From Zygnema circumcarinatum SAG 698-1b (Eukaryota > Plantae > Zygnematophyceae), in NCBI GenBank assembly GCA_037447605.1, contig CM074814.1, positions 1,426,001-1,490,000 on the forward strand: a stretch of 64,000 nucleotides of DNA, in the 5' to 3' direction. Positions 18,227 through 57,445 of this stretch are shown in pieces. The notes beneath the pieces are model-generated. The model had not been told where the DNA came from. It searched no databases and saw only the letters and a program-made list of their open reading frames with translations. Numbering within the stretch: position 1 is the stretch's first letter; every line of letters starts with the position of its first letter. The translations under genes and the position numbers were made by a program.

Positions 18227-23306
<5,080 letters not shown>

Positions 23307-35741: not shown

Positions 35742-36606
35742 CTATATTGGAAAGCAATTATAGAGCGAAGGGTAGACGGCTGTCGCGGGTTGTGACATGA
35801 TGCGGTTCCCTTCGGCCGCATTGCACACGTGCAGGACGAGGCCGACTGGCCAGAACACGACAGCTGTCGCTGCATACGCCACCGAGGCGAACACGAACCC
35901 GATCGGCTGCACACACAAAGGGACGGCAACTTCAGTTTAATGTTTCAATCATTTTTGAAAGCGCAAAGGGCTCGGCTCCAGTGGTGCGAAAAATATTCGA
36001 AAATACTCAATAGTGACGTAAGTGTGTGATCAGACAGCTTTAGAAGGTTCATCGCAGAGCATTCTGTACCATGAATACGTCAGCCAGAAGTCTGTTTTGA
36101 AAAAAGCAACGTTCTATTACAGACCTGAATACGTTAGCCACTGTGAAGAACTCTACAACCTGATGGCAAACACACGTCCTTGCTAGTAACTTTGCATGCA
36201 GTTCTATCTGTCGGAGTGCCTAGCGAGGGACCAGGCGCATTGCTAGTCCTAAACGTAGCTCATCAAGCAGCAGTTTAAAACTAGTTTGCAAGCATCTAAG
36301 CAAACTAGACCGATGGCTTCATTCCAGTCCGCCTCGGCATTTTACTCCGACATTTCCATGATTGCGAAGCTCAGTCTAACATTGAGCTTCTGTTTCCCTC
36401 AACTTACAACTGTCAAAATCATACTTTTGCTATCAGCTTTTTCGACCAGCATTCCCCAAGATTTCTGATTACAAGAACCACATGCACAGCTCCAGCCATA
36501 CCTTCACAGTATTGGTGCCGCCCAGCTGATTCCCTGTGAACTGCGGGCAGAGCACAGGCCCCGCCAGGCCTCCCCCGCTCGCCAAAGGCCCTCCGGCAGC
36601 CGCCAT
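35742..36606 (-). CDS. Small membrane micro-protein paralog A, 89 aa, two exons (36502-36606, 35742-35906)
   Basis: MAAAGGPLASGGGLAGPVLCPQFTGNQLGGTNTVK | PIGFVFASVAYAATAVVFWPVGLVLHVCNAAEGNRIMSQPATAVYPSLYNCFPI*. Donor AAG/GTATGG, acceptor GTGCAG/. Exon 2 is strongly similar to paralogs B and C. Not in the ORF track. Confidence 0.85.
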
Positions 36607-36730
36607 TTCTCCTTACAAAAAAGACTTTTTCTGTCCTCACTTGTGGCGCTGACCTTTCCTTTTTAATACTATATGGCGACTTGCCAGCGAGCGCACCTCC
36701 TGCAACCCCGCCGCCTGCCGGCCCTTTCAT

Positions 36731-36966
36731 TATATACTCCTGCAGCAGCCCTGATGACCGGCGGGCGCCCTCCAATGGCGGCTGCCGCGTGGGCCGTCCT
36801 GCACACGTGGCGAATTCCCATTGGGGGACGCTCGGCTGCAGTTCCAGCAGGCGGCGGCCGCCGGGGAGGAAGGCCACTTGGCGCCGAACGATCAGCCCAC
36901 GTGGCAAGCTAAAAGGGCGGCGCGTGGCGGAGTGGCCAAGCTCCGTCTGTTTCAGTCCGCCACGTG
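36731..36966 (-). promoter_or_regulatory. TATA plus G-box/ABRE cluster upstream of paralog A
   Basis: TATATAAT (minus strand, ~36729-36736); CACGTG at 36804 (ACACGTGGC), 36898 (CCACGTGGC) and 36961 (CCACGTGTC). Confidence 0.65.
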
Positions 36967-37194
36967 TCGCTGTGATTAGTCGGGTCATCGTACGGATTTC
37001 CGTACGACCAGTTTCCTTGAAGAACAGGACGAGCCAGTTCGGGTAGCTATAGAACCGCTCAGTTCGACAAGGTCCAGTTTGAAACTGTGTCACTGAGAAC
37101 ATGCTGCTGTGCAGAAAGTGGGCCTCGTGCGCGGCTCGTCCTTTAAGAGGGGACAGTGGGTCAGCGCCGCCTCGCCTCGCCTCGCCTGCTATGA

Positions 37195-37254
37195 ATGTAT
37201 GTATGTATGTATGTATGTATGTATGTATGTATGTATGTATGTATGTATGTATGT
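37195..37254. repeat. (ATGT)15 microsatellite
   Basis: About 15 perfect ATGT units. Confidence 0.92.
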
Positions 37255-37707
37255 ACGCCGCACTTTCTCACATGCTCCAAAGCGAGTGAGCGTAAAAATT
37301 CCACCCTTCCACCTGACAATGTTGGAACTTACATTCACCGGTATAACCACCGGTTCATGTGGTTTCAAGCAGGCTGAGAATTACAGTCCCTTGTTCCCTG
37401 ACAGTTTGGGAGCTTGCACTCAACTCGTGGTTTCAAGCAGGCTGAGAATTGAGGTGGACCAAGCAAGCAGCTCGACTGGAACACTGAGAAGATCACGAGC
37501 ATCTCTAAAGTATATTCACATTGCAGCCTCTGACCACAATACATCCTGAATACCAATCGCACCCGCAAAGGCGCGTTCCAAAATAGAAATGATAAGTTCC
37601 TTCGGCCAAACGAAGGCGAGGGCATTCTGCCCCAACAATTCTTTCGTGCAACTTTAAACTTGTTTGCAAGTTTGATGCTGCATAATTGAAGTCACATTCA
37701 GAATTGC

Positions 37708-40700
37708 TCATGTGCTCGAAGTGGGGTCCGAGTGGTTCCAATAGAGAACCGACCCCTTCCCGACCGGCCCGGACTCATAGCTGCGCGCTTTGAAGCCGCC
37801 GTATTCCCCATCGGCATATGCCACGCACAGGTCCAACATCTGCCGGAACACCTCACGATCCTTGTAGAATGCCTGGCTGCGAAACTCCTCTAAATCCATC
37901 CACTGCAGGTCCAACCCATGAATTCAAAAAAATCACTTCAATCACTTCACTTCGTATAAAGAAAAGGCAAGCATCCTGTCGCCTTCTTTAGGAAGACAGT
38001 GTACAAAAGCGCGTTCACATCCATGAATTGGAGATACTGTCAACCAAAGAATGTGAGCTACAGCAAGAGTTCGACCAACCTTGGCGTCTTCAATCTCCGC
38101 CTCCTGCTTTGTAATGTCTGACGAGAGGGGCCGAAGTGCGCAAACGAAGAAAAGATCGGATTTTCCAAAAGCAATTTGATGAGCTTGCCTGCAGCCCTCA
38201 GAACCGAGTTGCACTCTGAGCCTGTTTCCCCCTCATCTCACCGCATGTCCCTGTCTGTGGAACACACCAATCTGCCGCGAAAATTTACGAGGTTCGTTCT
38301 CCTGCTCTCATATCTGATTAGAGCATTCTCTGACAGAAAGCTACGCGATACTTCATTGGGCCTTGACTCAGATGCTGAGTCTGTACCTGAAGGTCAAAAC
38401 TGTCAAAAACTCCGTATCCACCTGTCCACACCCCACCTCTCCTAATGAATCTACAAATACAAAAACGAGCAACCTACTTCACCAAAGCAGATGACAAACA
38501 TTCGTCATGGAGATTGCCCTCTGCAAGCACTTTCAAGATAATTGAAGGGCTGAGAATGCAACATGCTGTTTCGGCAACAGAATCTTGAATGAGAACCTGA
38601 ACGGGAAAGAGCCCCCAATGTAACCACTTCTGCAATTCCTGCAATCACGCAGGAAAGCGAAAATGAGCAGACGCTTACCCCTGTTTCCTCTTTCACTTCC
38701 CGCACAGCGCCATCACAAATATCCTCCGCCTGCGGGCCGGAAAGTATGACAAAGGTCAGGTGTAGAAAACAAACTGCTAATTATAAAGACTAACTAATGA
38801 CTATGGCAATTCTCTGCCTTTCATCTTACGTCTGCATGGACTGATGTGGCAATCTCCACAGCAGATACAAGCTGTAAGCGTCCGCCTCTCACAAGTCAAT
38901 GAACTGCAGAGTGGCGCAACACAGATGGGGCGAGTGAGGTCTCTCCCTACCTCATTAACAAGTCCAGTTGGCATTTTCCACACTCCCATTCCGCGCAGAG
39001 GTCCATTCTTTTCCTGGATTGCCAGCACCTGAGAGCCCTCAACCGTTTCAGTGCAACTTTCGAAAGGACTTCACATGATTTAGTTCGATTAAAAGAACAG
39101 CATTCAAAGAGAAAAGAAGCCGTAAAGCAATGAAGGTATAAGTGAAATAAAGAGGCTGGCCCAAATCCTCACTCATCACGAATCATTGTTATCCAGTTCT
39201 AACCTACTGTACCATGCCTGAAAAGGTAGACGTGATTGGTTATGTGCTGTTTTACGATGGACGTTACAACTCAAGAGTCTCACTCTCACTGATATCGCGT
39301 CTAGGATAGGCAGAAGGAGAGATTCGTGATAGAGTGTAACTGTGCACCACTCCCTCGCTGCATATAACAAATTAGGTGCGAAACCCACTCAGTAAATACC
39401 CCGGATTCTTACCTGCCTCTTTTCGTTCATAACGAATGCTCCAATGCCGACCTGGTGTGAAGCATTTGGAGGAAGTGTTGAAGGAGTTGATGGCAGCCAG
39501 CGAGTAAGCATAACGTGGTTCGGCTCTGCATGGTGGTAAATGAAGCCTGCCTATCTTGCAACAAGTAACTCCGTGTCAGTAGTGCCACCAGAGATGGTGT
39601 CAAGGGCGGGTTTCGCATCGAAAAGCATCACTAGAAAATATTGGGAGAAAGACAAGAGGAAAAACGAACAAGAGTATTTTCATCAAGAGTTGAGCCCCTG
39701 AGGACTTTTGGAGCAATCTTTGATTCTCCGGGTTAATCCATTGAACAATAGTGGTAACGCGCTTTTCCTCGTTTGTAGCTTTTGTCTTCAAACTGCTAAA
39801 GACTCCTCTGTGCACATTCAGTGAAATTACCTCGATCGCAATGGGTACTAGCTTTGCATGAGCCAATGGAAGTTGTAGCCACACTCCCTTTTTCCCCTGC
39901 AACGCATAAATGCTGCAATTCAAGACTTTGCTAATCATTTGGACGCTAAGAGCCTAAAGCACGAATGGAGAAAAGGGTACACACAATTACCCAACGCCCA
40001 GCTCCCCAGACCCACCCTCTTTCCCCCTCCCCGCAAAACTCTTGCTTCTATCCCCTTGAATATAACTGGATAGTCTTCCAACCTTTTAGCCTTTCCGATC
40101 TCTGCGTCAAAAAACGCCTATGGAAACATCTAACGTTCAGCAAGAGCTAAGGCCGAGGCTGTTGGCTGCTTATGACAAGAAACGATGACAGGCAGGAGTT
40201 GGGCTGCACAAGGTTCAGATATGGCAGTACTAATCCAGTAAAATGTAATCAAGCTTCAATAGTTTAGGGTACCGCAGGATGTACCAGCGTCTGCCAAGCC
40301 TCCAAGGATGAATGGAGCTGTTGCCGGAACTCCCTCTCATCCAGCGGAATAGAAGAAGGGTTCACAATAATTCCGTCATATCGATCCTCTCTACCAATAA
40401 GTACCGCACCAGCTTGCACTTTGGAAAGCAGAGCATCATGTTGCACTTGAGGAAAACAGAAGGAGAGTTATAAACAAGGAGTTCAGCTGCAACTTCTGCT
40501 GGTTGAACAAATAGCTATAATACGAGATACATGGATGTACAGTGAATACGTCATTGGAAAGGTAAATGACGACGGATCTTGAGAGTGTATGTGAATGATT
40601 TCGGGAGAAATTTGAATTCTACAGGCATTCTCCGTTTCTCAGTACTCGTCCCTGCACACGCTACTAACGTCAACTTAGCCTATCCAATAAATTGGCGTAA

Positions 40701-41153
40701 CATACTCCAAGACACCCCGCAGCAAAGTTAGTCGTCCAGTTAACTAGTGCACTTAGCTGAGTCTACTAATCAATCAGATTGCAGATAGTTTTCCAATACA
40801 CTGAACAGGCTAATACCTGAAGTGCTCACTGAATCGTCCGGTGGCAATTGTGCAATCCCTGTGGCCTCCTCAGGAGCCGAAAGATCATCGGCGTCGGGCA
40901 TGAGATTAGAAGATATAGCTCTTGATCTGGGAGGTTTAGAGTGAAGGGAGGAACACCAAAAAGGAAGTTCAAACAGTCTGGACGCCTCAAAGACGGGGGT
41001 GTTGAGCAAGGCCGCTGGAGCAACGCCAGAGTGATGCACAAGCAGCTGTTTGCAAGAAGGCTGGAGCTGGCAACGAAGCCCTCCGTACCCAAGCGGGAGA
41101 AAATCTGTGCTAGCGAAATAAGTTATCCTGATGCGAAGTCGCTGCAGCTGCAT
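37708..41153 (-). CDS. Nudix hydrolase (plant NUDT2/NUDT8-like group) with transit-peptide-like N-terminus
   Basis: Exons encode EDRYDGIIV, GKKGVWLQLPLAHAKLVPIAIE, GFIYHHAEPNYVML.RWLP...LPPNASHQVGIGAFV, VLAIQEKNGPLRGMGVWKMPTG, a complete Nudix box G-LVNEA-E-DICDGAV-REVKEETG, FGKSDLFFVCALRP and WMDLEEF. Confidence 0.92.
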
Positions 41154-41589
41154 GGAATAAAGACTCCAGCAGCTTCATGCGTCGAGCACACGGCGTGGCG
41201 GCATCCTGCCGCAATGCGTTAGTGCAGCGACTCGTTGCAGTCCAATTGCCCTTCACAGAAAGCGCGCCAACAGGTCCGTAGGCTCTCATCAGAAGGGGAA
41301 AGCGACGCCTCCCACACAGAGGAGCCCTTTGCGACATTCGCAACCCTAATTTTGGGTATGGTGAGCTCGAGGTAGAGCATTCAGAGGGAGTAAGTAGTAA
41401 TCTCAGCGGAGGAGCCGCGCGGGAGGACGGCGATTCGTTCTCAGATAAAAGGGAGGAAGAAGGAAAAGGAGCAGATTTCCTGGTCACAGGAAGAGCTGCT
41501 TCTCGTCTCTGTTTTTCTGGCAAAGGGTCCTGAGCTTGCTCTTGGATTTTTTCTTCAGCTCCTGTTCACATCACTGAAGGCGACGGCTA

Positions 41590-43056
41590 ATGCGGCCATC
41601 AGCAGCTTCAAAGTCGGCCACCCAGGTCTCTTTGCTCACAATGTTTGCCAAAGAAGCTTTCAGCCTTTTGTGGCTGCGCAACTTTCGAGAGCCCTCAACA
41701 CGGCTTGCAAGGCGGCCTCCAGCTAAGAGCTCTTTAAGCCCTAGAGGTAAACAGGACCTCTCTGGTTCTTCCAATTTTCCTTCGCCTGTATCCGGTTCAG
41801 GCGCAAGCTTAGACACCGGATTCTCGTGGCTGCCTGGACGGTTTCTGCTCCCTCGAGGCCTGAGTGGTCCATTGCTTGACAGGAATGCCACTCCTTCTGT
41901 TGCTCCCGCGAAAAGCAGCCGCAAGGGTTCAAAGCCTGTTGGAGGTATCAGGACTACAGTGGCTCAGGCTGGTCAGGAGGAAGCAGTTGTTAGCCAGGAG
42001 AAGAGGAACGTATTGTCTAAAAGTGTTTGGCCAGAGGACGTCGAAAAAATCACTAAGAATTTAGAAGAAAAGTTCCCGAATAAAGAAGTGGGAAGCGCTG
42101 CTGTGGGAAACATCAGAGCAATGCTGCAACTTGGAGCGAAACGAGCTCAAATTCTGCGACTGTTTTCTGCCGGCGACACTTTCTATGATAAAGAGCATAG
42201 CAGTGCCCTGCTTTCAAAATCAGAAATTCTAAGCAAGTTTGGATTGCAATCCAGCGTGCTGTTCAAGGCTCTCTCGAAAACTTCTGACTGGCTGGCCACT
42301 CCGGATGTTGAAATGGCTCAAAATTTGGAATATCTGGACAAAGGCTTGGGTGTGAACAATCTGGGAAAGCTGGTCAGCGTTAATCCTCATGCATTGAGCC
42401 TTCCACTCGATGCAATTAAAGAGGCCGTAGGATATCTTCACGAATTGCAGATAGCTGATGCTGGGGCTGCAATTGGACGTAGTCCAGTCCTGCTGGGCAA
42501 GGGGAAAGGAGATCTCGAGTCAAGAATAAGTAATTTAGAAACTGTTTTGCAGCGGAAAGGAAGTGAAATTTGGATGCTCATTGCGAAGCAACCAGCGCTA
42601 CTTTCACGAAGCTCAGATACAATCTCGGAGTCTCACAATGGTCTGGTGGACACCTTTGGGAAAGATTCTGCCAGTAGACTTATAGCGAGTCAACCTCAGC
42701 TTCTTGGTATGGAGTGGGCACAACTCAGGGTCCCACTCGAAGGTTTGATTTCGCTTTTTACAAAGGACGTAGCAGTGCAGATGGTGATCACATGCCCTCT
42801 CTTGGTGAGCAGAAAGTGGAAGGGCACCCAGGAGAAATTTACATTCCTTCGAGAAACGATGGGGCGCAGCGTGGAGGAAATTCTAGAATGGCCCACAGCA
42901 TTAACTTCAAGTTTCGATGGCCGCTTGCAACCTCGCTATGAAGCTCTCCAGAAACAAGGAGTTGAAAAAGACTTCAGTCTGCGCAGCATGTTTGGTTGCG
43001 ATGATGCCACGTTCAAACGGAGATTCAATGTCGAGCTTCTCAAAAAAAAGAGGTAA
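41590..43056 (+). CDS. mTERF: mTERF family protein, intronless, 488 aa, organelle-targeting-like N-terminus
   Basis: Leu-rich ~30-aa repeats (QNLEYLDKGLG, NPHALSLPL, SPVLLG, QPALLSRS, QPQLLG, CPLLVSR) and a typical C-terminus EKFTFLRETMGRSVEEILEWPTALTSSFDGRLQPRYEAL...SLRSMFGCDDATFKRRF. Confidence 0.85.
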   Translation: MRPSAASKSATQVSLLTMFAKEAFSLLWLRNFREPSTRLARRPPAKSSLSPRGKQDLSGSSNFPSPVSGSGASLDTGFSWLPGRFLLPRGLSGPLLDRNATPSVAPAKSSRKGSKPVGGIRTTVAQAGQEEAVVSQEKRNVLSKSVWPEDVEKITKNLEEKFPNKEVGSAAVGNIRAMLQLGAKRAQILRLFSAGDTFYDKEHSSALLSKSEILSKFGLQSSVLFKALSKTSDWLATPDVEMAQNLEYLDKGLGVNNLGKLVSVNPHALSLPLDAIKEAVGYLHELQIADAGAAIGRSPVLLGKGKGDLESRISNLETVLQRKGSEIWMLIAKQPALLSRSSDTISESHNGLVDTFGKDSASRLIASQPQLLGMEWAQLRVPLEGLISLFTKDVAVQMVITCPLLVSRKWKGTQEKFTFLRETMGRSVEEILEWPTALTSSFDGRLQPRYEALQKQGVEKDFSLRSMFGCDDATFKRRFNVELLKKKR

Positions 43057-46020
43057 AAATTTCGACCCTTTATTTTGCAGTCCTCGCCATATCTCAACAA
43101 CTGGACGAGCACCTGATGCTGTTATTGCAGCTTTTTCCCCTCGTTTCTTCTTGTCTAATGATCGCTGTGTCTCATGTCGAATTGCCCCGATGTCCCTCCT
43201 TGTAGGCAATGCACGGATGCCACACTCTTGTTCGGAATTTACTTTTTTGTAAATTCTATAGTGCGTGAACTCAAAGACGGCTGACCCGAGTGGATGCGCG
43301 AGATGTTGATGATTATGGCTGGCTACAACATATCAGAAAGTCATTGGACACGGTTGCAATTGACTATGCACTGAATCATGGAGGAACGCGCTGACGAAAG
43401 GCCCTTTTTTTGTGCAGGAGTTCTTCAAAGAAGCCAACCTCTGATTCTGAGGTCTGATCATTTGGCTCCTCTCAAGGAAGTAAGTTGGCACTCCCTCGGT
43501 GGCTTGCGCTTCTTTAGCTTTCGGATCTGCTGCCAGGGCTTGTCTTTGCCTGTGAGGAATGCACGCTGTGCATTCTCGCTATGCTCCAGTTAACTCTGCT
43601 CCAGTTAACTCTGCTCCAAGCAGGTGGCTAGAAACTTTAGAAGCATCATGTGGAGCAAAGAAACAGTCTCGTCTCAATTCTCTGTATTTCCATGGTCAAG
43701 ATGGCCGATGAAACCCATAAGAGAAACGGGATGCCATGTGGGATGCATCATGGAGCCGATCTATTTTACTTGCTCATTCATGGGGGGGATATGAAACAGG
43801 CCCTTCCTACAGCACAGCCGCATATTGTTACTGTGCTCTGGACACGTGTGATTGACGAGCACATTGCTCTGGAACGAGGTTGGACTCGTTGCTAGGATTT
43901 GTTCACGCCTTCTTGAAGGAACTGCTGAATAGGTGTGACTGACTCGTGTACACAGCGTAGACAGCGTATACAGCGTAGACAGCGTGACAGCCACCATAGA
44001 TTTGACGATGCGTGCACTGCCTTTACCTGTAGGATAGGCAGGTGACCAGGACTCCAAGCGGCAGCTAGAAACTTGCAAATGTTGGCAACATGAGCGTGCG
44101 CTTTACCTTCACCCACCAGTGAATGAGTCACACATGGCGATGGTTGAGACGACTTTGTGAGACAAATGATGACTATATGCGGCATAACCAGTGATAGGTT
44201 AAATTGACAACGAGCAGAACGCATGTGCAATGTACATAACACAAGCAGCAATTGGTTCCAGTTGGTAGATGAAGAATGTTGAAGATGTCTAAAAATTCAA
44301 AGTATCGAGGCTTTGAAGGAAACGGCTTACAATTGGACTTCTCATAAGAGTTTATTTCTGGCGCTTGGCCAAAACCACTTCGACGTCGCTCAACCGACAA
44401 CCGCCAGCTTCCGGGCGCAAGGACATCTCACAGTCTTCAAAATAGTTTTCCTAACGAACACACCCAACCAGGAGAATGTTGAGGGTCGTGTTTCGGATAC
44501 GAAGGAGAGGAGTTTGACAGAGGCGCAGGAATGCTTCCAGCCGCACCATTTTCAGAGAATTGATGCAGCTTCTGGTATCGTATTTCATTTCCAAATTAGC
44601 GTATCTAAACGGCTGGTTACACGTGATTCTGCACCACCATGTACAGAGGGTAGGTACCTGAATTTTTCCCAAGTTGTACTGATGAACTAGGGTGAGTAAT
44701 GCCATGAAGCATCTCTGGGGTTTTGCGTGCGTTCCGGGATCCTCAATGCCTGAAACTAGAAAATATGAAATCGGGAGGGCAGGACAGATTAGTTGACTGC
44801 CTTCTGAAATGTAGTTTCAGGCAGTCTGCTGTTAACACAGTACTTAGCAAAGTTAAAACTGTCAACGGTCAAATTCACTCTCATCAAACACATGCAAGGA
44901 ATTTCGTTTCTCAAAGGATGTGGGAGGGGAGTTTTGGAGGAGGGGAGGGAGCAGAGACGGGTAGAGGAAAGGGAGGGGGGGGAGAGATGGGGGAGTGAAA
45001 GGGTGAGGGAGAGGAAAAGGGAGAGGGAGAGAAGGACGTGGACAGGAGGGAAGTGAGGGTAGGCGGAGAGAGAGGAGGCAAGACCGATTGGTGGGCAGAA
45101 AACGGAAGGAAGCGGCGTTTGGTGGCAGTGAGTGAATTTGGGCGAGTGCGAGCGGCATTAGGAAAGGGAGAGATTCACTGTCTGCTACCCAGAACGTGAA
45201 ACCAGCTGAGAGGGACATAACTGCAGTGCCTCACTATAGAATTGAACCGAGTGTGCAGGAAAGTATTCTTACATGTAGTTGATAAGTGATCGACTATTGT
45301 TTTTAACGATGTTGTCATCTCTCTTTGCTCTTCATATCGCCTCTTTAAAAACAAAGAGAGGTGTTTCAGCATTGACGCCACGCCACGCTTTCGCCCATCG
45401 CATGAGAGCAAACCCCACCCAGCTCTCGTTAGACAGCGGATGAGTGAAGTGCAGGTAAAGTGAAGTAGTCGGAGTTCGTGAGAAAGAAAAAGGAAAAGGA
45501 CGAGAGCACGAAAAAGGGGAAGGCAGAAGTGGGGGAGGGGAAACGGCAAACGGAGAGGGGGGAGAGAGAGGTGGAGAAGGACAAAGAAGGAAGGAGATGG
45601 CAGTAGGAACGACGAGGGAGGGGCGGAAAAGTAGAGGGTAACGCATTAAGAAGCCAGTCATGATCTCTGAAGTAGACATTTTTCAAACAGTAATTCGCAG
45701 TATTCAGTTGAACAGTGTATTCTGTTAGATGAATTATATGCTTTTAAACTCAAAGTCGATCATTCGATATTTCCTTTATATTAGGTTTGGCTGATGACCT
45801 GGGTCAATCACCCTTACCGCTTTATGGTAGTAACAGAGCAGTAGATAATAGATGTACCACATAAATAGTTCACGTCAAGTTTTACATTTCTGGTGAACCT
45901 AAACTGAAACACTAGAGTTCGTTTTGTTGGTGAAGGCGGATTGGTCCACAAGGGTTTCTTCATCATGTCAGGCAGCCAGAATGCAGCGCGCTAGGGCATG
46001 CATATTGAAAATGTTCAAAC

Positions 46021-49000
46021 CTAGTTGTTTCTGAGAAGATTTGTTACCTGTTGCGAGCGCTCTGCATATGCCGCTGCCGTGATCAGATCATCCAATCTAT
46101 ACCTCTTCCGAACACTTGATGGCAATGTCACACTTGTCCCCTTCGATGTGGGTGTCTGTTCAACCTCTCGTTCAGACTCAGTATCGCTTGGAAGGTCAGT
46201 TTGGGGCTCTTGATTACTGTTTTCTTGAGGTGATGGGATACATGCTGCATGTTCATGCAGGTGGTCGTCCCTCATTCGGGCCATGCTTGGCACCCATGAA
46301 GTTTCGGAATCTTCTGAACACTCGTCAGTATCACTAAATACCGCAGTGAATGATTCGCCTCCTTCTGCTTGTGCTTCATCCCTGAGGTCCCTCACAGTAC
46401 GTTCAGTTGTATGGCAGGGAGTTGCTTTTCTCTGAGATCCTAAAAGGGATGCCGAGTCATTAGAGCGATGCTCAAACTCAATAGGCAGTTGACTTTGCCA
46501 TGCGTAATTATCCCAGTGCCCGTTGTCTGATCCATATTGCGTCTCCAATGGTGGAGAAAAGTTCGGTCCAAAAGAGGTTTGTGTATGAATCAGACCCCTG
46601 TCGATCAACTGCTGGGAAACGTCTGCTAAATCTCGCTCATCTTCATCCAAAGTTCCATAATTCATGGAGTCTTCCAGGGTATCCAGCGTCCAATTCATCT
46701 GCCTTTCGTATAAAACTGGAGATTCATTCTCTGCTGTACTTATGTTGTTACAATTGCGCGGATATTCTCTCGGGCTCATACCATAGTCAGTTTGCAAATC
46801 CTCTAAGTAATGGGACTCGGTAGTGTCTTCCTCCCACATGCGACCAAGTTCTGATTTCCCGCCAGGCGACATTGGCGGCGAAAAAGTGGACCAATGTCGA
46901 CGTGCATCTTCCTGCGAGCTGATGTGATCTCGGTCGTAATTCGAATAAGCATGACAGTAAGAACTTGATGAAAAAGTTGTCAGAGTTTCCGAAGGGCTGA
47001 CAAATGGTGAGGCTCGAGGGTCTGGAGAGTCCTGCTTTTGCCCTGGAAGGAAAAAAATCACAAAGTACACTATTGATTCCTTTCTTGCAATGATGGAGCT
47101 ATACAAATGTAAGACCTGCCGAACAGTTTGACTAAGTAACGAGCAACGCTAGTGTACAGTCTTCAACCGAACACACCGAGAAGTGGCTCATACGTTGTAG
47201 AGAGAGCTGCACTCTCCTCAAATCTAACCTTGCCAGTGACACTCCTGAAACCACGACAAGAATTGAAAATCGAAGTGAAAGCGAATGGCACCCACATATT
47301 ACCTGGAAATGGTTCTGATGCACAGCCTTCAGCATGATCAACATATTGTCCCAAGTCAGCGCTTGATTCCGAAAGAAACTCACTCGGAATCTGCAAGATC
47401 AGAAGAGACGATTAAGAATCATCTTCAGGAGGACATGTCGGTTGGGATGATTCAAATAGCTTCCGAAAGATTTTGGAACTTGAAGGAACATAAAGAACAC
47501 CGTTGGTTGAGATAATTCGTGCCTACATCAAAAATATCTCGATGTAGCTGATGCAGATGTTCGAGGAGGTCAAAATCACCTAAAGCCAGAGAAAGGAAGA
47601 TGGTGAAGAAACGAGACTACAAATAGAGTCCTAATTGGTTTGGTAGACATAGTGTGATGTAGATAATGAGAAAAGCAATCGATCGAGGGGGCGAGATCAC
47701 ATATGTACACGTTTAGAAGTGTGAAACTTCGTATTACAAGCAATGGTGATGGGTTCGTCCGCTCACAAGATGATAAAGCCGTCCGCATGAGCCCAATCCC
47801 TACAACGCTCGGTGGCAGGTAGTCTCCTTCTCCTGCCAGTCCTGCGATGTTGGGGGGAGGTCGCAACAGCTGCTCCGCATCACGAACAAACCTGCAATCA
47901 CAAAGTCAAAGCAAATTCAGGGGACTGTTTAGATCAAAGTCACGTGGACGCGACGAGGATAAAGCGAAGGCAAATAATATGGCAATGAAATGAGCAAAGA
48001 AGCAGCAAAAGGAAAGGAAAATCTCCTCGTTCTAGATTGTTTAGGATAGGCGGGAAGCCTTCATCATGTTGGTGATCCAACCCATGAAAAAAATCGACAT
48101 GCGCAATCGTTACAGTGAAATGAAACCTTTGAAGAAGGATAAAGTGAGCAGTTGTCGCTCCTTGGATTGACAAGCATACCCTGCTGTTGCTCTCTAAGAA
48201 CCTTCAATATATGGCTAGAATGAAGGAAAAAGGAGGTCCCCATACCTGAATGTTCGCCTGTTTATCTCTCTCAAAGCCACAGGGTGAAACCTCTGAACGT
48301 CCTCCTCACTGAAACATATTTTTCCCAGTGGAGCCATCTGCGCTCACGGTCCTCGCCCTGAGAAATCAGTTACCATGGGTAAACTCATGTGCCCCACCTA
48401 GTTCCAATATAGACAAGAGGACCAGCAGAAGAATCACAAAGGACTCACACTGTCTGCTGTATCACGAGCCCGAGCGACCTTCAGTCTTATTTTTTTATGT
48501 TTCTTTTCACCGTGGCTGTCCAGTGTTTGGTCCTCCTGCTTTTCTAGATCCGTGTCATCACTGATGTCTTCTATTGGGTCCAATTTGTCCTTCAGTCCTC
48601 TCATGGACGAATGATGGACCATATGATCCCAGGTTTCGTCAATTGGATCGATCATATCACTGTGAGCAACAGGCGATTTGTCTTTTGCTTGAAGAGAAGG
48701 TGGCGCTGTTGTTTGCAATAGTGGAAGTGAAGAGCGAGGATGACAAGACAGCAGAGTTTCCGCTGAAGCATTCCTTCCTGGTCCTGTATAAGTACGGGCC
48801 TCAAGAGGGCCCAGATTGCGATTCATTGCCGTTTCTGTACTTATCGAGAAGCCACACTTTGTAGAGCAAATGGTCGTGGTTGATATTGTTTCTTGGTCAG
48901 TTTGTATATTATCCTCGTCGCACGACATGGTTTCGGCGGCTGGTTGCACCTGTGCAAGGAAAGATTCTTGTTTTTGTAGGGATTCATGGAGATACTTCAT

Positions 49001-51224
49001 TGTCGTTAGTCTAAACTACATTCATTGGCTCTAGCTTTAGCCAAAAAGATATGACAACCGGCATTCCTCTGTTTCATCATCCACTGTAAAGCTACACCGG
49101 AAAAGCGAGCAGCAGGAGCATTGTTAAAACCTACTTCGGTTCGGAGATGCCCGCCAGTAACGAGCTCTTCTAGTTCTTTGAAGCCTCGAGAATCAAAGAT
49201 GGATACTTCAGCCTGTTGTACACGATTCGAATTGCCGCTGTTCGGCTTCGGAATCGTCACTTCAGCTTCGATGGTATCGCCCTCAAGTGTGAGTTCCTTG
49301 GTGATCGGCAAGATGCTATGCTTAAATGGACTCAAGTCAAATTTTTGCAAGTTATCGATTTTATCGTCTGTGATGAGGGAAGTAGATCCCTCGAGATGAA
49401 GTCTTCCACATGAACTCAAAACATAAAACATATCGAAATATGTCAATTTAACGTTTGGTTTCCCTGCCAGTGAAATTCCTTTCGCTTCAATGAAAGTGTC
49501 AAAACGAAAAGCAGTAAAAGATAATATGGCGACTACTGGCTCTGCAGTCAACCACGTTAGCTTTTCTGTTTGAAGATACGTTTTTGGTTTACCTTTCAAT
49601 GAGGCTGTCCAATGCCGTGGTTACTTCCTTATCAAGATCAAAACACAGGGCACTCTTGGGAAGGAAAATATTTGAATGGCGATGTACAAATTCTTCCTAC
49701 ACCGCCTCACAAAAGCCAAGAAAAGTTAACGGAATAAGGCCCTTAGCTGACTGCCGTGCCGTGCAGTATTTTAATAGGACTTATCACAAAAACATTATAT
49801 TGGATGCAAACTTCACTAAACCAGGTCCCCATGCTTACCAGTTTGTCAGCTAAAGGTGCAAATCGCATCGAAGTTCTACCAATTTGTTTGGTGGTTCCAT
49901 TCTGATGAAATGACAGCTTGCCATACGTAGAGGTAGGATCCCCAGAACTTCTCGTTAATGTTCCAACATCCATCCCGAGATTGCTTATCAAGGACACAGC
50001 CGATTCATAGTCATCCTGACATAAAAAGGCATCGTCTACAACAGTCCCTGCGCCAGACTTATATTCATGTAAGCATTCACACTATTCACAGGTTGATGTT
50101 AGCAGAGACTAACAAGGGAACTCCTCAGGCGATGTCAGAAAAACATCACACGCTGAATGGTTTTGAAGGTTACGGGCTTGCGATGAAACTTACCAGAGGG
50201 ATAACTGGTCTCGCTCGTGGACTTTCGGTCCTCCTTGCAGAGTTTTTTCTGCAGGCCCTTGTGATGCTTGATAGCATCGGTTGTTGATTTCACCAAATTT
50301 TCTGCACTTCTTCCGTCAGGACGAAAACTTGCGGCTGGTTTCAGTAGATATAATAGTACACAATAAGCCTATTCACGACAAGCACTTAATGATGAAATAA
50401 CTTTGAAAAAAAATACTCAGAATACTCATGTGGGAACATGCCGGCGGAAAAACTGACGTGTATAGACACACCTTTCATGGATCGAATCAACTGCAACCCA
50501 AACCTCACAAAGAAATCCTTAAGGGGGGTAGAGAATAAACGAAGGTGATAGTCGCTTCTTCTACTTTCGTGCTTTTTATAATAGTTTATAAAAAAGCCCG
50601 TAAATGTGGTCCGTGTGTAAGTGACAATCATAGCTATCAGCAAACTCATTCAAAGTGCAGGCTAAGTTCAGAAGCAACATGTGCCGGACACAGAAATAAT
50701 CTTTAGTTCGTCTGCTACATAACAAGTTGAAGGTAGAAAAATATAAATCCACATATCACGACGAAGAGTGTATTTCTGGGAGCGATAGCCAACCTCCACT
50801 CGAATATGTACGTTAGTTGAGGCCGCATTGACGTCTTCTTTCGTTGCCGCTGCAGGTGGTTTGTCATCTCCTTCCTGTTCAGAAAATGCAACCAAGCACC
50901 AGAGTGTCAATCAAAGTTTTGGTTTCATGATGAGAAACTCTAGTCCAGGTCCTCCAACATTTGAAGGGCAGATTTGCAGGACAGAAATTTCAATGAAATT
51001 CCCGCTTCCAACAGCCGCCATCACCTTATGCTTACAGGTTGTAACTGAATCAAACCTACCATAAACGGTGACAAGGCTGCCGCGATGTATTTTACTTCGA
51101 AAGGGTTTTTCTTATGCCTCCTGTGTTCAACATCATCTGCCAAAGCAAGGACCGAGACAGCCATGCCTCTCTCATATTCATCCATCCGCTTCCCTTTCCC
51201 TCTTCCTGTCTTCATCGCACTCAA
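46021..51224 (-). CDS. Large multi-exon gene of unknown function
   Basis: A chain of open segments bounded by GT/AG sites, e.g. ...YIAAALSPFM/gt (~51054), cag/EGDDKPP (~50875), ...LIRSMK/gt, cag/ASFRPDG...SYPS/gtaag, cag/GTVVDDAFLC, EEFVHRHSNIF, ag/FVRDAEQLLRPPP (~47890), and a ~340-aa acidic terminal exon from ~47044 to the stop at 46021. No family recognised; start codon and several boundaries are uncertain. Confidence 0.6.
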
Positions 51225-51721
51225 GCTTTTTTTTTCTAAAAAGCCTCTTGAGCGGCTGCCACGTTTGGAGATGCTGAAACAAATCCCAGCAGGCAGTCTG
51301 CACGCAAGGCGAGGCCTGCAGCAGGACTCGACTCAGGCCGCCGGCCCCTGCCAGCGCATGCACTCAACAGCAGGTACCGTGCGGCCCACTGAGGGCTTCC
51401 TCTTCGCTGCAAGAGGTCTTTCCAATGTTCCTGACAGGCCCTCTACGGTGGAGGTCGCTTTTGAAATATATAGTGCTCAAAGACATGGACAGCTCCTATA
51501 TGGAACAGTGGGTTACTTTGCTACCTGAAAAAAAGCCCATGGCCGGTGGAAAACTAAAAGGAAGTGAACAACGACGTGAGGAAAGGAAGTTGTTGTCAAT
51601 GTTTGCTCTGGACTGCCGCTGGAGAGGGCGTGGAATAACATGGTGGCCATGGCGGAAGGGAAACAAGGGTGCTTGTTGTGCATGGCGTACACTTGTGTTG
51701 GGACTTAGGTCCGTACAGTGT

Positions 51722-51841
51722 TGTCCCATGGTGCGACCACAAGTTCCCATAGTGCGACCAAAGTTCCCTTAGTGCGACCAAGATGTCCCATAGTGCGATC
51801 AGAATATCCCATACTGCGACAAAACTGTCCCATAGTGCGAC
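51722..51841. repeat. 21-bp minisatellite, six copies, core TCCCATAGTGCGAC
   Basis: Cores start at 51724, 51745, 51765, 51786, 51807 and 51828. Confidence 0.92.
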
Positions 51842-53044
51842 GTGCGTGCGACGAGTCGACGCCGGCGAGAATCGATGCATGCGAACAAAATTCGTTCCCA
51901 CCCACAGAGAAATGGTCCCGAGTGCGAGGACGTGCGGAGGGACCGGGAGGGAAGGGAGGGAAGGGGAGGCGGGGCGGCTGCAAGGGGCTGCATGGCGAGC
52001 AAGCGCGACCTCGATCGTGTGACAAGCTATCACGTTGTGTGTTGGCAGAGACAGGGCTGCGAGGGAGAAAGGCAAGGCTCATCGAATGGGAGCTTACGAT
52101 TCAGGAATTGGTTTCTTAAGGTTTTTTCTTGGAGAGACAGAGTTACAGAGTAGAGGAGACAAGAGATATGCTCTGTAATCCTGACATTAAGAGTGGCACT
52201 ACATATTGGGTGGGTTCCGGGTGGTAATTCACTGAGAAAATATAAAAACGTTGAGGTTGAGGCTTTCCCCTGGGAAGAGTTGGTCCATATTGTGTGAGAT
52301 TTATATGTGCTTGTGTCGAGTGCCGCAAGCTTGTGCGAGATCCGAAGAAGTAGGTCCTAAAATAAGTGCTGGTTTCCCTGTCTGGCGCAGCCACTCACGC
52401 TGCGTTGATGCCAGTGCTTGCGATAGTGTCGTTGGCGAGGGCAAGAAGAGTATTAAGTAAGTATTACGAAGAGTATTAAGTAAGTATTTGGTCTTTTTGA
52501 TGGATTCTTATTGGTATTATGCTGCGTGGGATTCAGGATGAACATTTACTTCCGAACGTCGCGCAAAAGTACTGGTTTTTTGGCTTTTATGATTGTAATG
52601 CTAAGGAACGCAGGCTGGCTAATGCAAGAGTACCCTGTTGCACATGTTTTGAGTTGCCTTTATATGTTTTAGCGAAGGGTTCAGCGATGTCGGATTCGTC
52701 GCATGCACATGGTCCAAAATCGACGAGGCTGAGTGAACTCTAGTGGCCGGGGCTGCACTTAAGCATTGTCGTAACGAGCAGTTCAGTCCGCAGTCTCTAA
52801 CTGAGCATGCCCTGTTGCATTTCCATTGCATTCCAGGTTGAGGAGGTCTACGGCGGAACGACCGAATTCCCTGACTGACTCTTTTCAAAAGCGGGGGGGG
52901 CTTGACGAAGTCAGTAAGGTAAAGGCTGTTCATCTTTTTATGATTCATCGTGAAGTAAAAAATGCCTACACTTCTATTAACTGTTTCTTTAGCGCTGTAC
53001 CTATGTTGATCCTTTACTGCGGATGCTTTTGACCCTGAATGCAG

Positions 53045-53838
53045 ACTCTGAAGAATCCATAAGACCAAGCGAAGCAATCTGGCCCGGAAAAGTTGAGATC
53101 GTATCAGGAAACTATTGAAAATTTGCAAAAACAAGCCAAAGGCGCTGCTTCTGGTGCAAGCGGCAGCCTGCAAGACACGATTGAGGAATATCAAGAGTAC
53201 ATCCAAGATCTGTGAAACAAGCTCAAGGAGAGCGGCTTAGAGACTCTGCACAATCTCCAGCGGCAGGGAAGCGATGGTTATGAGCAAGGGAAACAACGCG
53301 CATCGGAAGTAGGCCAAACGGTGAGGATAATGTGGATGAATATGGAGAAACTTTGTCAAGAGCTGCGGGAAAAGGTGAAGAACGTGTCCAGCAGTATTCT
53401 GAAGGCGCAAGAAATAAGGCGCATGAAAATAAGGATGTTGCAACGGAGCAGGGTCAGCGAGGATACGACGCTGCTGCCGAGTATGTTCAACCAGCTTAAG
53501 GTCTAGCCGATAAGCTTTCTCAGCAGGGTGGTGATAGCGCAGAAGGAGTGGGCAGCCAGGTATACGGAGCTGGAAAGGACAGTCTCGACAGAGCTTCGGA
53601 GTATGTGAAGGGGAGTCAAGATTCTTCCGAGGTGTTTGAAATTGCAAACGATAAAGTGTCTGCAGCATCTGCGTCAGTGCAAGTCAGTGCCAAGAGCGTA
53701 CGAGACACTTACCATGAGAAACTACAGGGAACTAAAGACGATGCAAAGAAATATGCCAATGATGCATGTGGCGCAGCAAAAGATTACGTCGAGGGCTCTC
53801 AGGATCAGGCCCGGAGTATGCTGCGTCTGCGAAGGTAG
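53045..53838 (+). pseudogene. LEA-like pseudogene, paralog of the 61016-62840 gene
   Basis: TLKNP*DQAKQSGPEK...QAKGAASGASG aligns with AKNRYEDSKQIGAEK...KAKQAASSAAG. In-frame stops at 53060, 53213 and 53497; frameshift near 53320; LEA-like composition (AKDYVEGSQDQA). Possible upstream exons at ~52687-52917. Confidence 0.75.
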
Positions 53839-54771
53839 CTTTTGAGTGATTTGCTGCGTTAGCTATGCCTAGCTGTTCTACAGTCTAGCGAGTTGACTTT
53901 GGCTTCCTGTGGGATGGGAATGTTGCAGAGGGGAATATATGACTAGAGTTAACCAGATAGAGCAGAGAGCAGAGAGAGGCAGAGAGAAAGACAGGGAATA
54001 ATTCATTCCTTCATCTGATACCATGTGTTTGAAAACCAATCATTGGCAGGCACATTGCATGAGCTGAAACGAGGGCTCGGTCACAGGCAATACACGCGCG
54101 GTAGGAATGCGAGTATCGAGTTTTCGATGAATAGGGCATGTCAAACTTATTAAAATCGAACGATACGGCGTTCTTAAGTATTACTAAAGATTGTTTATAC
54201 GAGGTATACTTTTACAGGCGTATTGCTATGTCCCCGGCGTATTCGTTTTGGTAGCAGATTGATGGCAGCTGTTTTTTCAGTAGCACTGCGATTTTCAAAT
54301 TTGACTCTCGACAACATATTTTTTATATTTCAGTGCTAGATGATTCTTTTTCTTCTGGGCCCTGTTGTTTTTTTCCAGTTTACCATTGACGAATGACAGA
54401 GGTACGAATGTAATCACAATTTCAATGAATTCCACAGGCCAGTACAACCAAAGCCACATTTTTTCAAGCCTTTTGACAAAGGAAGGTTTATACTCTGGTG
54501 AATTAAGCTGCATGCCCCCCCCTTATTTATAGCTCGTAAGCACACGGGGCGGCTGCGCACATGGAGACTAGATTCTACTCGTGTACTTTTCTCTCGACAA
54601 AGCGACATCACCTGGTTGCAACACTGAACAACTATTAAGCGTCTGTCCATTCTCCTCATTATACAGAAGATAACCCATATTCACAGAGCAGATACCCCAC
54701 GTAACAACACCTTCCCCTTGGTTTTATAATGAGGAACGCTTGCCTACGCTTGCTTACTAGCAGGTGGGTCT

Positions 54772-55520
54772 TTAAATTGGTAGGCACGCGTAGACAGAGG
54801 GGTAAATACTTGATGCTGGCATAGAGATTATGCGAGAACCCTCATAGCGATTGCAGATATAGAGGATTAGACCGATAGGCCAAAAGACGACTGCTGTCAC
54901 CGCAAAGCAGATCAGCGCCAGAACAAATGAAATAGGCTGCACACATAACACACATCTGCAGATCAGTAACAATGCACATAGCAAGAAATGGGACTGAAGC
55001 TCTCTTCACAACGACAATGTGCACTCCAATAATGTAATTTTATTCTGAAGTTTTAAAACTTGCTTACAAATGCGAAACGATAATCAACATGAAAAACAAA
55101 TCGCAAGAACTAGGAACAAAACGGCAGTTGGATAAAAAGCTCCGACGACAAAAACCTCGCAACCAACACACTCCAAACCAGCCTACTCATGCTAGTAATT
55201 TCCATGTCTGCGAGAATGCGGCTCATCTAACAACAAGCGAGCATCGTTCAGCAACAGTTGATGCAAAAGACCCTTCCCCGCGGAGCCTCTTGCAGTCATC
55301 ATAACAGGACAAGCGCCTTAAGCATGTATCGAACTACCGCATAAGCCACAACAAACCGGACCCTAACCGGGATCCCATGAATGCCTTAAAACGTCCTCCT
55401 CCCATTGTCAACTCCTTCAAGAGCCGCAGGACCCACCTTGCACCGCCCCGGGAAGCAGTTAGGGCAAATAACGCAGTTTGTCCCTCCCAAAATCGGCCCT
55501 CCAGCCGTCACTGATGCCAT
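54772..55520 (-). CDS. Small membrane micro-protein paralog B, 82 aa, two exons (55437-55520, 54772-54936)
   Basis: MASVTAGGPILGGTNCVICPNCFPGRCK | PISFVLALICFAVTAVVFWPIGLILYICNRYEGSRIISMPASSIYPSVYACLPI*. Donor AAG/GTGGGT, acceptor GTGCAG/. Confidence 0.87.
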
Positions 55521-55633
55521 GGCTACCGGTCTCCGCTACTGACTCTGGCCTTGGATTCCTCACTTGCAGCAAAAATCGCAGGGCGCAACTCTTCAAGGAA
55601 AGCTCTCAGCAAAAAATGAAGTTCCCTTCCGCC

Positions 55634-56050
55634 CTATATAATGGCAGCCAGCCGCCGCCTCCCTGCCGCCCGGCCGGCACCGACGACACGTGGCCCATTG
55701 TCCGCTGCCAACGGTTGCCCGCGATGCGTCAGACAAGCCCACGTGGCGCTTCGCGGTTGGTTTGACCGAGTCGCGGCCACGCGTCGGCCGGAGCAGTGGC
55801 CTCAATCACGCCTCCTGTCCGTACGCGGCGCCACGTAGCGCAATACCGCGCCTAAGCGCTCTGAGCCGTCCGATCGCGCGGGCCGCCTATCGGCGCGCCC
55901 TGAGGCCTCCGCGTGGGGGGGGGCCGCTGAGGGCAATGGATGGCGGGGCAACGAGTTTGGAAAAAGGCGCGCGGGGGATTGGGAGGGGGGGAACACGCAG
56001 GCGAGAAGGAGCCAAATAGGAGCTCGCTACGTGGGCCAAGTGTACACGTG
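55634..56050. promoter_or_regulatory. Bidirectional promoter with G-box/ABRE cluster between paralogs B and C
   Basis: TATATA at ~55634; CACGTG at 55687, 55740 and 56045; CCACGTAGC at 55831; TACGTGG at 56028; ACGCGT (CE3-like) at ~55780. Confidence 0.65.
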
Positions 56051-56249
56051 GTGGATTCATATTGGAAGGTGCGCCACGATGGCTCGGCCCAAGGGCCTTG
56101 AAAAGGCCCGAGGCTGAAGGTGAGCCTGGCGAGGAGGGGAGCGCTTTTGCAGCTGGGCTCGCTCTGCGAGGGAGGAGGGAGAGGTGGAGGGGGAGGAGGG
56201 GCGAGGGGGCGGGAGGAGGAGAAGCAAGTAACACTGAGGCGACGGCGCC

Positions 56250-57445
56250 ATGGACTGCTGCTTCATCCCCATCTGCATTGAGTGTGGAAGCCCGGACAAT
56301 CCTTGTGGATGCAAGGTCTTCCCGCCTGCCCTACCTTGGCCTTCCAGCTACACGGAGATAAGTGAGAAGAAGGGAGTGAAGTGCAATATTTCAACCAAAT
56401 TGCTTGAAATTCATTATGTTTTCATTATTATTTTATATTTTTAAGTATTCTTTTACCCTTTTGTGCATAATGTTTCCTCTTTCGTGGTCACGGCTTGATT
56501 TTGTGACGTAGATACAGTCATATCAGCGTGCGCCTGGCCATCTCTTTCTATAGGCTATCACTACTCTACTCCTTGGTTCCTTGCCTGCTCCAAGATATTT
56601 TATGGGTATCTTCCGGTTCTTTCTCTGGATTCCCTTTCATCTCTCTCGATTTTGGCTTCTCTATGTGTACAAATACCTCCATTACTATTGCGTAGGCTTT
56701 TCCTATTATCAGCTACCTCTCTGTTTTTCCTCAGACGCTTAGTTAATTATTAGTTCAAATGGTAAGTCCTATATGAGCACGTGCGGTATTCGAAATCATG
56801 TCCTTCTAAGCGCCTTTCACCCCCCCTACCTTTATATTGCTGCATCTCTTGCCAACGCGCGTCTGGCATTCTGCAAACCATTTCCCGTATTTCTTTTCTC
56901 ACCTTTAGTCGCAGACGTCCTTTCTGTCAATCCTAAAAGGCTGCACTTATTTCTGATGAGTGTCTGGATCTTAAGAAAGCTTCTAATCCTTTTAAGGTGC
57001 ATCGCCTACTTGCGGGCTTCACTCTAACATAGAGCCACTGTCCGCTTTCCTCCATTAACGGTTCTGAGAGACATACGATGATTCACCTTCAAAATGTTTA
57101 TTTCATACGCCCTCCTAGTTCCACCTCGCGTCAAGCATTTCTACTTGTTGATTGTTTCGTTTGCAGTCAAGGTTCCAGAGGTTAGTTATCCAGGAATCTA
57201 GCCTGGTGCTTGACCATGCATGGAGAAGGATGGTCAAAGACTGATATGAGCTCCGTACTTGGTGGTCGTTGGCTGGGCAGATCCTGGGCCCTACTTTGGC
57301 CTTTATTGCATTCGTAGTGGCTGCCATCATTGAGTGGCCTGTTGGAGCCCTGGTCTACTGCTGCAGTCCTGACTTAGGGCGTCGCATTATGGGACATCCG
57401 ACATTTGTGGTCTACCCAAGCGTAAATAGCTGCATTCCCATCTGA
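56250..57445 (+). CDS. Small Cys-rich membrane micro-protein paralog C, 76 aa, two exons (56250-56315, 57281-57445)
   Basis: MDCCFIPICIECGSPDNPCGCK | ILGPTLAFIAFVVAAIIEWPVGALVYCCSPDLGRRIMGHPTFVVYPSVNSCIPI*. Exon 2 is the same length as in A and B. Closely resembles an uncharacterised land-plant small-protein family as I recall it (not database-checked). Confidence 0.9.

Follow-up and report, generated by a model that had tools for sequence, protein, structure and literature searches.

Three predicted two-exon genes of the Little protein 1/SALP1 family, two of them of a divergent type, in Zygnema circumcarinatum

We analysed a 64,000-nucleotide stretch of contig CM074814.1 of the zygnematophyte alga Zygnema circumcarinatum SAG 698-1b (assembly GCA_037447605.1, positions 1,426,001 to 1,490,000), hereafter the window, in which a first-pass annotation had proposed three two-exon genes for very small membrane proteins. 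These genes, here called A, B and C, are very probably functional paralogs of one family, their splicing being predicted, and that family is in all likelihood the one already named 'Little protein 1', 'SALP1' or 'cold-regulated protein', which has one characterised member. As predicted proteins, A and B belong to an old, derived and divergent subfamily and are not canonical members, and C has the canonical form. The locus is not a new kind of system; it shows an SALP1-type family in an alga close to land plants.

Gene models and the shared exon-2 domain

The exons of all three genes were read directly from the window and translated, and the two-exon structure, the phase-0 intron after a Lys codon and the second exon of 165 nt that had been proposed, together with all coordinates, held on this reading. 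Each first exon opens with ATG and closes on the Lys codon AAG, which is followed by GT; each intron lies in phase 0, has GT..AG borders and ends in CAG; and each second exon, 165 nt including the stop, encodes 54 amino acids (aa). Gene A (36606-35742, minus strand) has a first exon at 36502..36606, which encodes 35 aa and is Gly/Ala-rich with one Cys, an intron of 595 nt (35907..36501) and a second exon at 35742..35906, which encodes a predicted membrane helix with F-W-P-V-G followed by G-N-R-I-M, Y-P-S and C-F-P-I. The first exon of gene B (55520-54772, minus strand) lies at 55437..55520 and encodes 28 aa with four Cys arranged as C-x2-C-x2-C-x4-C-K; its intron of 500 nt (54937..55436) precedes a second exon (54772..54936) of the F-W-P-I-G type. 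Gene C (56250-57445, plus strand) begins with 22 aa (56250..56315) that include seven Cys and the canonical motif C-I-E-C-G...N-P-C-x-C-K, and after an intron of 965 nt (56316..57280) continues in a second exon (57281..57445) with the canonical series G-P-T-L...E-W-P-V-G...G-R-R-I-M-G-H-P...Y-P-S...I-P-I. Since no in-frame ATG occurs in the upstream extension of any of the second exons, they can be translated only by way of the splice. Summed over their exons, the predicted products measure 89 aa for A, 82 aa for B and 76 aa for C. Genes B and C are oriented head to head, with 729 nt between their ATGs, and A lies about 18 kb away.

The 54-aa exon-2 peptides of the three genes need no gaps in their alignment and are identical in 16 columns, among them W-P-x-G, G-x-R-I, Y-P-S and C-x-P-I, which bears out the common pattern described earlier. 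When a profile of these peptides was run against all six frames of the window, it matched only A, B and C (E 2e-34 to 1.5e-32), and no further copies of the family were found there, the next best E being 0.37. In pairwise comparison, the paralogs agree at 65-80% of second codon positions and at 30-37% of third positions. Nei-Gojobori counting gave a proportion of synonymous differences (pS) of 0.68-0.85, which is saturated, and a proportion of nonsynonymous differences (pN) of 0.27-0.43. Since pS is saturated and pN low, the copies are old and their proteins have been kept by purifying selection. The saturation of synonymous sites precludes a value for the ratio of nonsynonymous to synonymous substitution rates (dN/dS) between the paralogs; the ratio is nevertheless well below 1, and not near 1, the outcome that the first-pass annotation had named as refuting its reading. 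The similarity of A, B and C is far beyond chance, as both the codon-position pattern and the recovery of an independent family elsewhere by the profile demonstrate.

The predicted join of A was compared with its closest relative, P0001, a 90-aa protein found on two assembled contigs of runs SRR8128904 and SRR8128905 (pN 0.137 and pS 0.786 against A). Over its whole length, exon 1 of A matches P0001 residues 1-36 at 69% identity and shares the same final V-K, and exon 2 aligns end to end and without gaps with residues 37-90 at 74% identity. The P0001 residues that span the join of A are part of one uninterrupted open reading frame (ORF) in contig L001, which supports the predicted position of the A intron. 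A TATA-like box was seen at L001:240-260, about 128 nt upstream of the P0001 ATG, and the intron is absent; the contig may thus represent a gene without introns in genomic DNA and not a transcript. Whether it is genomic or mRNA, its ORF supports the joined reading frame predicted for A.

We also examined the intron position in other members of the family. The coding regions of the moss Physcomitrium (L003), of Punica (L004) and of the fungus Caulochytrium (L006) have no intron. In the chlorophyte Monoraphidium, a canonical GT..AG intron at L005:1552-1933 fits at the same place (AAG|gt at 1551/1552 and cag|GTC at 1933/1934), and its removal restores the family's N-P-C-R-C-K-V-I-G-P-T-L-G. The deposited Monoraphidium minutum model (P0047, L005:1501-2095) uses a non-canonical join, and this public model is probably wrong by two residues. 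Since an intron fits at the same Lys in Monoraphidium and none is present in the land-plant genes checked, the phase-0 intron is probably old in green algae. The locus thus indicates an old phase-0 intron that fits in a chlorophyte and is absent from the moss and flowering-plant genes checked.

Family membership and the F-W-P branch

The exon-2 profile was then applied to 1.84 billion protein cluster representatives, as a check that had been proposed with the original gene models. It returned 49 representatives at E<=1e-3, of which 27 reached E<=1e-10, with the best E down to 1e-23. Those of the 49 matches that were read, P0040 not among them, are either members with the W-P-x-G/G-R-R-I-M domain or low-complexity noise. 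Nearly all of those read carry the same domain, and most of them also an N-terminal C-x2-C-G...N-P-C-x-C-K. These matches agree with the earlier proposal that the three genes are true paralogs and that C belongs to a family conserved in land plants, of which it has the canonical form. The restriction to land plants does not stand, as members occur also in algae and in a chytrid-like fungus. Cluster look-ups and a word search placed many members in flowering plants, including Amborella; other land-plant members come from the conifer Cryptomeria, the clubmoss Diphasiastrum, the mosses Physcomitrium, Ceratodon and Sphagnum and the liverwort Calypogeia, and those outside land plants from the zygnematophytes Spirogloea and Mesotaenium, the chlorophyte Monoraphidium and the chytrid-like fungus Caulochytrium. 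Across seed plants the members are about 70-84% identical. Among the small membrane proteins of the green lineage this family is one of the best conserved, yet neither a Pfam model nor a structure exists for it.

A, B and C were also compared with this family feature by feature. All three genes carry its domain of about 54 aa, which consists of the W-P-x-G helix, G-x-R-I-(M/I), P, (Y)P and a terminal (I/F/L)-P-(I/F), and they fit its size class of about 70-90 aa with one central membrane helix and no N-terminal signal peptide. The cysteine knuckle C-x2-C-G...N-P-C-x-C-K, which is nearly invariant in the family, is complete in C; B has four Cys with another spacing that also ends in C-K, and A has a single Cys. 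Almost every sequence of the family alignment contains W-P-x-G, with Glu before it in at least 90% of the rows. This helix Glu (E-W-P) is present in C and is replaced by Phe in A, B, P0001 and a Mesotaenium protein, P0002. Searches of other kinds added little: a Pfam scan of the six exon peptides with E up to 10 gave no family at the cut-off and only chance-level transmembrane matches, a PDB sequence search found no solved relative, a word search with exon 2 of C was empty, as none of the candidates had three 5-residue words in common with so short a query, and a literature search with the family motifs found nothing relevant. A feature search of the ESM Atlas returned a 65-aa streptophyte cluster at 0.91, which we treat as a lead only.

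Although most members are labelled "uncharacterized", UniRef and NCBI name some of them "Cold-regulated protein" or "Little protein 1", and the view of the family as hidden and uncharacterised has to be given up. A review writes little protein 1 as SALP1 and describes it as a plasma-membrane protein, and the same source reports three closely linked duplicates in the genome of the moss Syntrichia caninervis that rise together in desiccating tissue (PMC8558194). "Little protein 1" is also among the drought-up-regulated genes of Physcomitrella (PMC5054160). According to a further report, the salt tolerance of rice is improved by OsSALP1, a "novel little membrane protein" that increases proline and the expression of OsP5CS under salt stress (PMC12819948). 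In the literature that we reached, one functional paper on the family was found. The original OsSALP1 study is reportedly that of Yuan et al. (2016), on rice salt tolerance. Grass members of the family are 74 aa long, which we take to be the length of OsSALP1 as well; this agreement is no test of the link.

Gene C agrees with the OsSALP1 family in length class and in its cysteine knuckle, its E-W-P-V-G helix, G-R-R-I-M-x-H-P and the Y-P...I-P-I tail, and linked multi-copy clusters are found in Syntrichia too. By contrast, A and B have Phe for the buried Glu and lack G-P-T-x-G and K-G-R-R, A is without the knuckle, and the phase-0 intron after Lys in all three genes has no counterpart in the coding regions of Physcomitrium and Punica. 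RCI2/PMP3 proteins (PF01679) are likewise tiny, stress-induced membrane proteins that affect salt tolerance. The analogy is functional only, however, as these proteins are unrelated in sequence and possess two membrane helices, and A, B and C gave no Pfam match to them at E up to 10.

The departures of A and B from the canonical form are shared. In both, the buried Glu is changed to Phe, the helix starts with P-I-x-F instead of G-P-T-x-G, and E-G-(N/S)-R stands in place of K-G-R-R. The same F-W-P pattern was found in only two further proteins, P0001 and P0002; the latter, of 67 aa and from Mesotaenium endlicherianum, is the nearest relative of B at 63% identity. In a maximum-likelihood tree of 105 domain sequences and 54 columns, the four F-W-P proteins fall together on one long branch (length 0.8) with a Shimodaira-Hasegawa-like approximate likelihood ratio test (SH-aLRT) value of 100, A beside P0001 and B beside P0002. 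This confirms the distinct F-W-P subclade that had been suggested for A and B, found so far only in this genome, in M. endlicherianum and in one sequencing sample. The placement of the branch inside the family is left undecided by 54 columns, and its nesting among flowering plants is a long-branch effect to be ignored. Since A pairs with P0001 and B with P0002, the duplication that gave rise to A and B predates the split of this alga from both sources. A word search with P0001 returned only P0001 itself, a scan of JGI metagenome contigs for F-W-P-type genes gave 130 pattern matches of which none was confirmed, and no F-W-P member was seen among the land-plant matches of the family. The branch is real and, as far as searched, undescribed, and it was found only in zygnematophyte or unidentified algal material. 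As a clade without the membrane-buried Glu, it offers a natural contrast for testing the role of that residue.

The fungal member deserves separate mention. Caulochytrium protostelioides encodes at L006:1501-1734 a clear 77-aa member (C-I-Q-C-G...N-P-C, W-P-T-G, I-P-F), which adjoins an M17 peptidase gene. Either the family is older than the green lineage, or this gene reflects transfer or contamination.

Promoters, predicted structure and competing explanations

We searched the window for the G-box CACGTG and found 27 sites; only four clusters contain at least three sites per 500 nt. Two of these four lie upstream of A and within the region between B and C, and most of these CACGTG sites have the (G/A)CCACGTG(G/T) form of the abscisic acid-responsive element (ABRE). 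The A promoter (36730..36966, minus strand) has a TATATAA at 36736-36730, 130 nt upstream of the ATG, and G-box/ABRE sites at 36804, 36898 and 36961. The intergenic region of B and C (55521..56249, 729 nt) holds G-boxes at 55687, 55740 and 56045 and further ACGT cores, a TATATA box for B at 55640-55635 on the minus strand (-120 from the ATG) and, on reading the sequence, a purine-rich tract before gene C. A MAFFT alignment of the A and B promoters revealed no general conservation beyond the shared motif types. Since these promoters are otherwise not alignable, we claim no conserved promoter module. As a motif count, the G-box/ABRE clusters upstream of A, B and C suggest control by stress or light. 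The 'stress-linked system' of the first-pass annotation is therefore retained in part: a link to stress is plausible from these clusters and from the family literature, and the word 'system' exceeds the data. As a head-to-head pair of a canonical and a variant gene with G-box/ABRE clusters, B and C should be useful for the study of stress regulons before land plants.

For A, B and C the highest-scoring hydropathy windows of 19 residues reach 1.8-2.5. AlphaFold2 models were made for two relatives, the A-like P0001 and the C-like P0071 of Sphagnum, from a 65-row family alignment. The P0001 model has a disordered N-terminus, a helix at residues 36-64 with a predicted local distance difference test score (pLDDT) of about 85, and two short helices; in that of P0071 the cysteine region is of low confidence, and helices lie at 19-50 (pLDDT 88-93) and at 52-71. 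The long helix thus spans 29-32 residues at pLDDT 84-93 in the two models. A shape search of the ESM Atlas gave no match with a template modelling score above 0.4. Gene C has the layout of a four-cysteine knuckle, a helix of about 30 residues with a buried Glu, a basic G-R-R-I-M and a short C-terminal helix that ends in I-P-I. In the canonical form both flanks of the helix are basic, and the orientation in the membrane is for this reason left undecided.

From these features a tentative working can be outlined. A, B and C would be switched on through bZIP factors that bind G-box/ABRE sites under water-related or light stress. The products would be single-pass membrane proteins, inserted without a signal peptide and after translation, since in so short a protein translation would end before the helix can emerge. 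A fixed contact within the membrane is suggested by the buried Glu together with the invariant W-P-x-G, and the four-cysteine motif could bind a metal ion or carry a lipid. By analogy with rice OsSALP1, the proteins are probably small modulators in the membrane that influence the balance of ions and osmolytes, most likely through binding of the conserved helix to a larger membrane partner. The F-W-P forms are without the charged residue; their partner has probably changed, or they serve in a modulatory role. A more elaborate version takes the F-W-P branch as a zygnematophyte-specific, neofunctionalised SALP1 offshoot that is a partner or antagonist of the canonical form, with B and C co-expressed from a bidirectional G-box promoter, in a two-component stress module of the algae closest to land plants that was later reduced to the canonical protein in land plants; we consider this version quite unlikely.

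Several points weigh against reading the locus as three stress-responsive SALP1 paralogs. Splicing, expression and stress induction in this alga are predictions made from the DNA, and membrane topology and partner are likewise predicted. The AlphaFold2 models have moderate confidence (mean pLDDT 64 and 73), the link of the family to OsSALP1 is drawn from database names and one review, and G-boxes also serve light-regulated and other genes. Against this background we weighed the alternative that the proteins are constitutive small accessory subunits of a membrane complex such as a transporter or pump, with stress induction secondary and A and B as isoform subunits. The tight and very wide conservation, at the seed-plant identities given above and extending to a chlorophyte and a chytrid-like fungus, would fit such a role, as would the fixed partner suggested by the buried Glu and the invariant W-P-x-G. 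V-ATPase subunit e2 was the sole match in the PDB search, yet its E of 0.83 is at chance level. No partner is known, however, the literature reports stress induction and a salt phenotype, and the promoters hold G-box clusters. We therefore regard the accessory-subunit explanation as unlikely; it is in any case compatible with the assignment to the SALP1 family and not exclusive of it.

Two further explanations fared worse. The loss of the cysteine knuckle in A and of the conserved Glu and basic patch in A and B, whose gene models are read from the genome sequence, might indicate that one or both are decaying pseudogenes or chance ORFs beside a real gene C. Their frames are intact, however, with canonical splice sites and stops in register; the low pN of A against its relative, the separate relative that each has in another alga, and the TATA boxes (-130 and -120), which have G-box clusters close by, also speak against decay, which we hold to be highly improbable. 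The first-pass annotation had instead compared the layout with TAXIMIN, and A, B and C could accordingly be secreted cysteine-rich signalling peptides. TAXIMIN proteins (TAX1/TAX2, TbTAX) are indeed small, hydrophobic, cysteine-containing plant proteins conserved down to mosses, and a loose resemblance exists in size, cysteines, hydrophobic core and terminal I-P-(C/I). TAXIMIN is targeted to the secretory pathway and carries a signal peptide at its N-terminus, and its mature C-terminal peptide of 46 aa contains six conserved Cys and three conserved Pro; none of these features is present in A, B and C. Their N-termini are Gly/Ala-rich or Cys-rich and not signal-like, the hydrophobic helix is central, and the exon-2 peptides contain 2-3 Cys, with 1-2 Cys in the part beyond the helix. 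No sequence match to TAXIMIN was seen, the profile matches read (P0040 not among them) being family members or noise as described above. The comparison is dropped, and a TAXIMIN-like identity is very unlikely indeed. Assignment of all three genes to the SALP1 family is the explanation that we prefer.

Other features of the window

The remaining two G-box/ABRE clusters, of 3-4 sites each, lie at window:25079-25232 and window:60737-60887, and in the cluster at 25.1 kb three sites have the near-identical context (G/A)TACACGTGGCATA. Both clusters may mark further stress- or light-regulated genes; the ORFs near them gave no Pfam match. At window:27685-33200 we observed three tandem copies with a period of about 2087 bp and a GC content of 0.32, which encode plastid-type ndhK (Oxidored_q6) and ndhJ (Complex1_30kDa). 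One of the ndhJ copies is identical to a public protein that shares its 90% cluster with ndhJ of the desmids Staurastrum and Closterium; this placement, like the Mesotaenium relative of B, agrees with a zygnematophyte, desmid-like source. This block looks like either a triplicated insertion of plastid DNA in the nucleus or an assembly artefact. Neighbouring ORFs match mTERF (window:41590-43056), the RNA-binding domain of poly(A) polymerase (21280-22524) and a ZIP zinc transporter (5405-6310), and the surroundings of A, B and C therefore have ordinary nuclear gene content.

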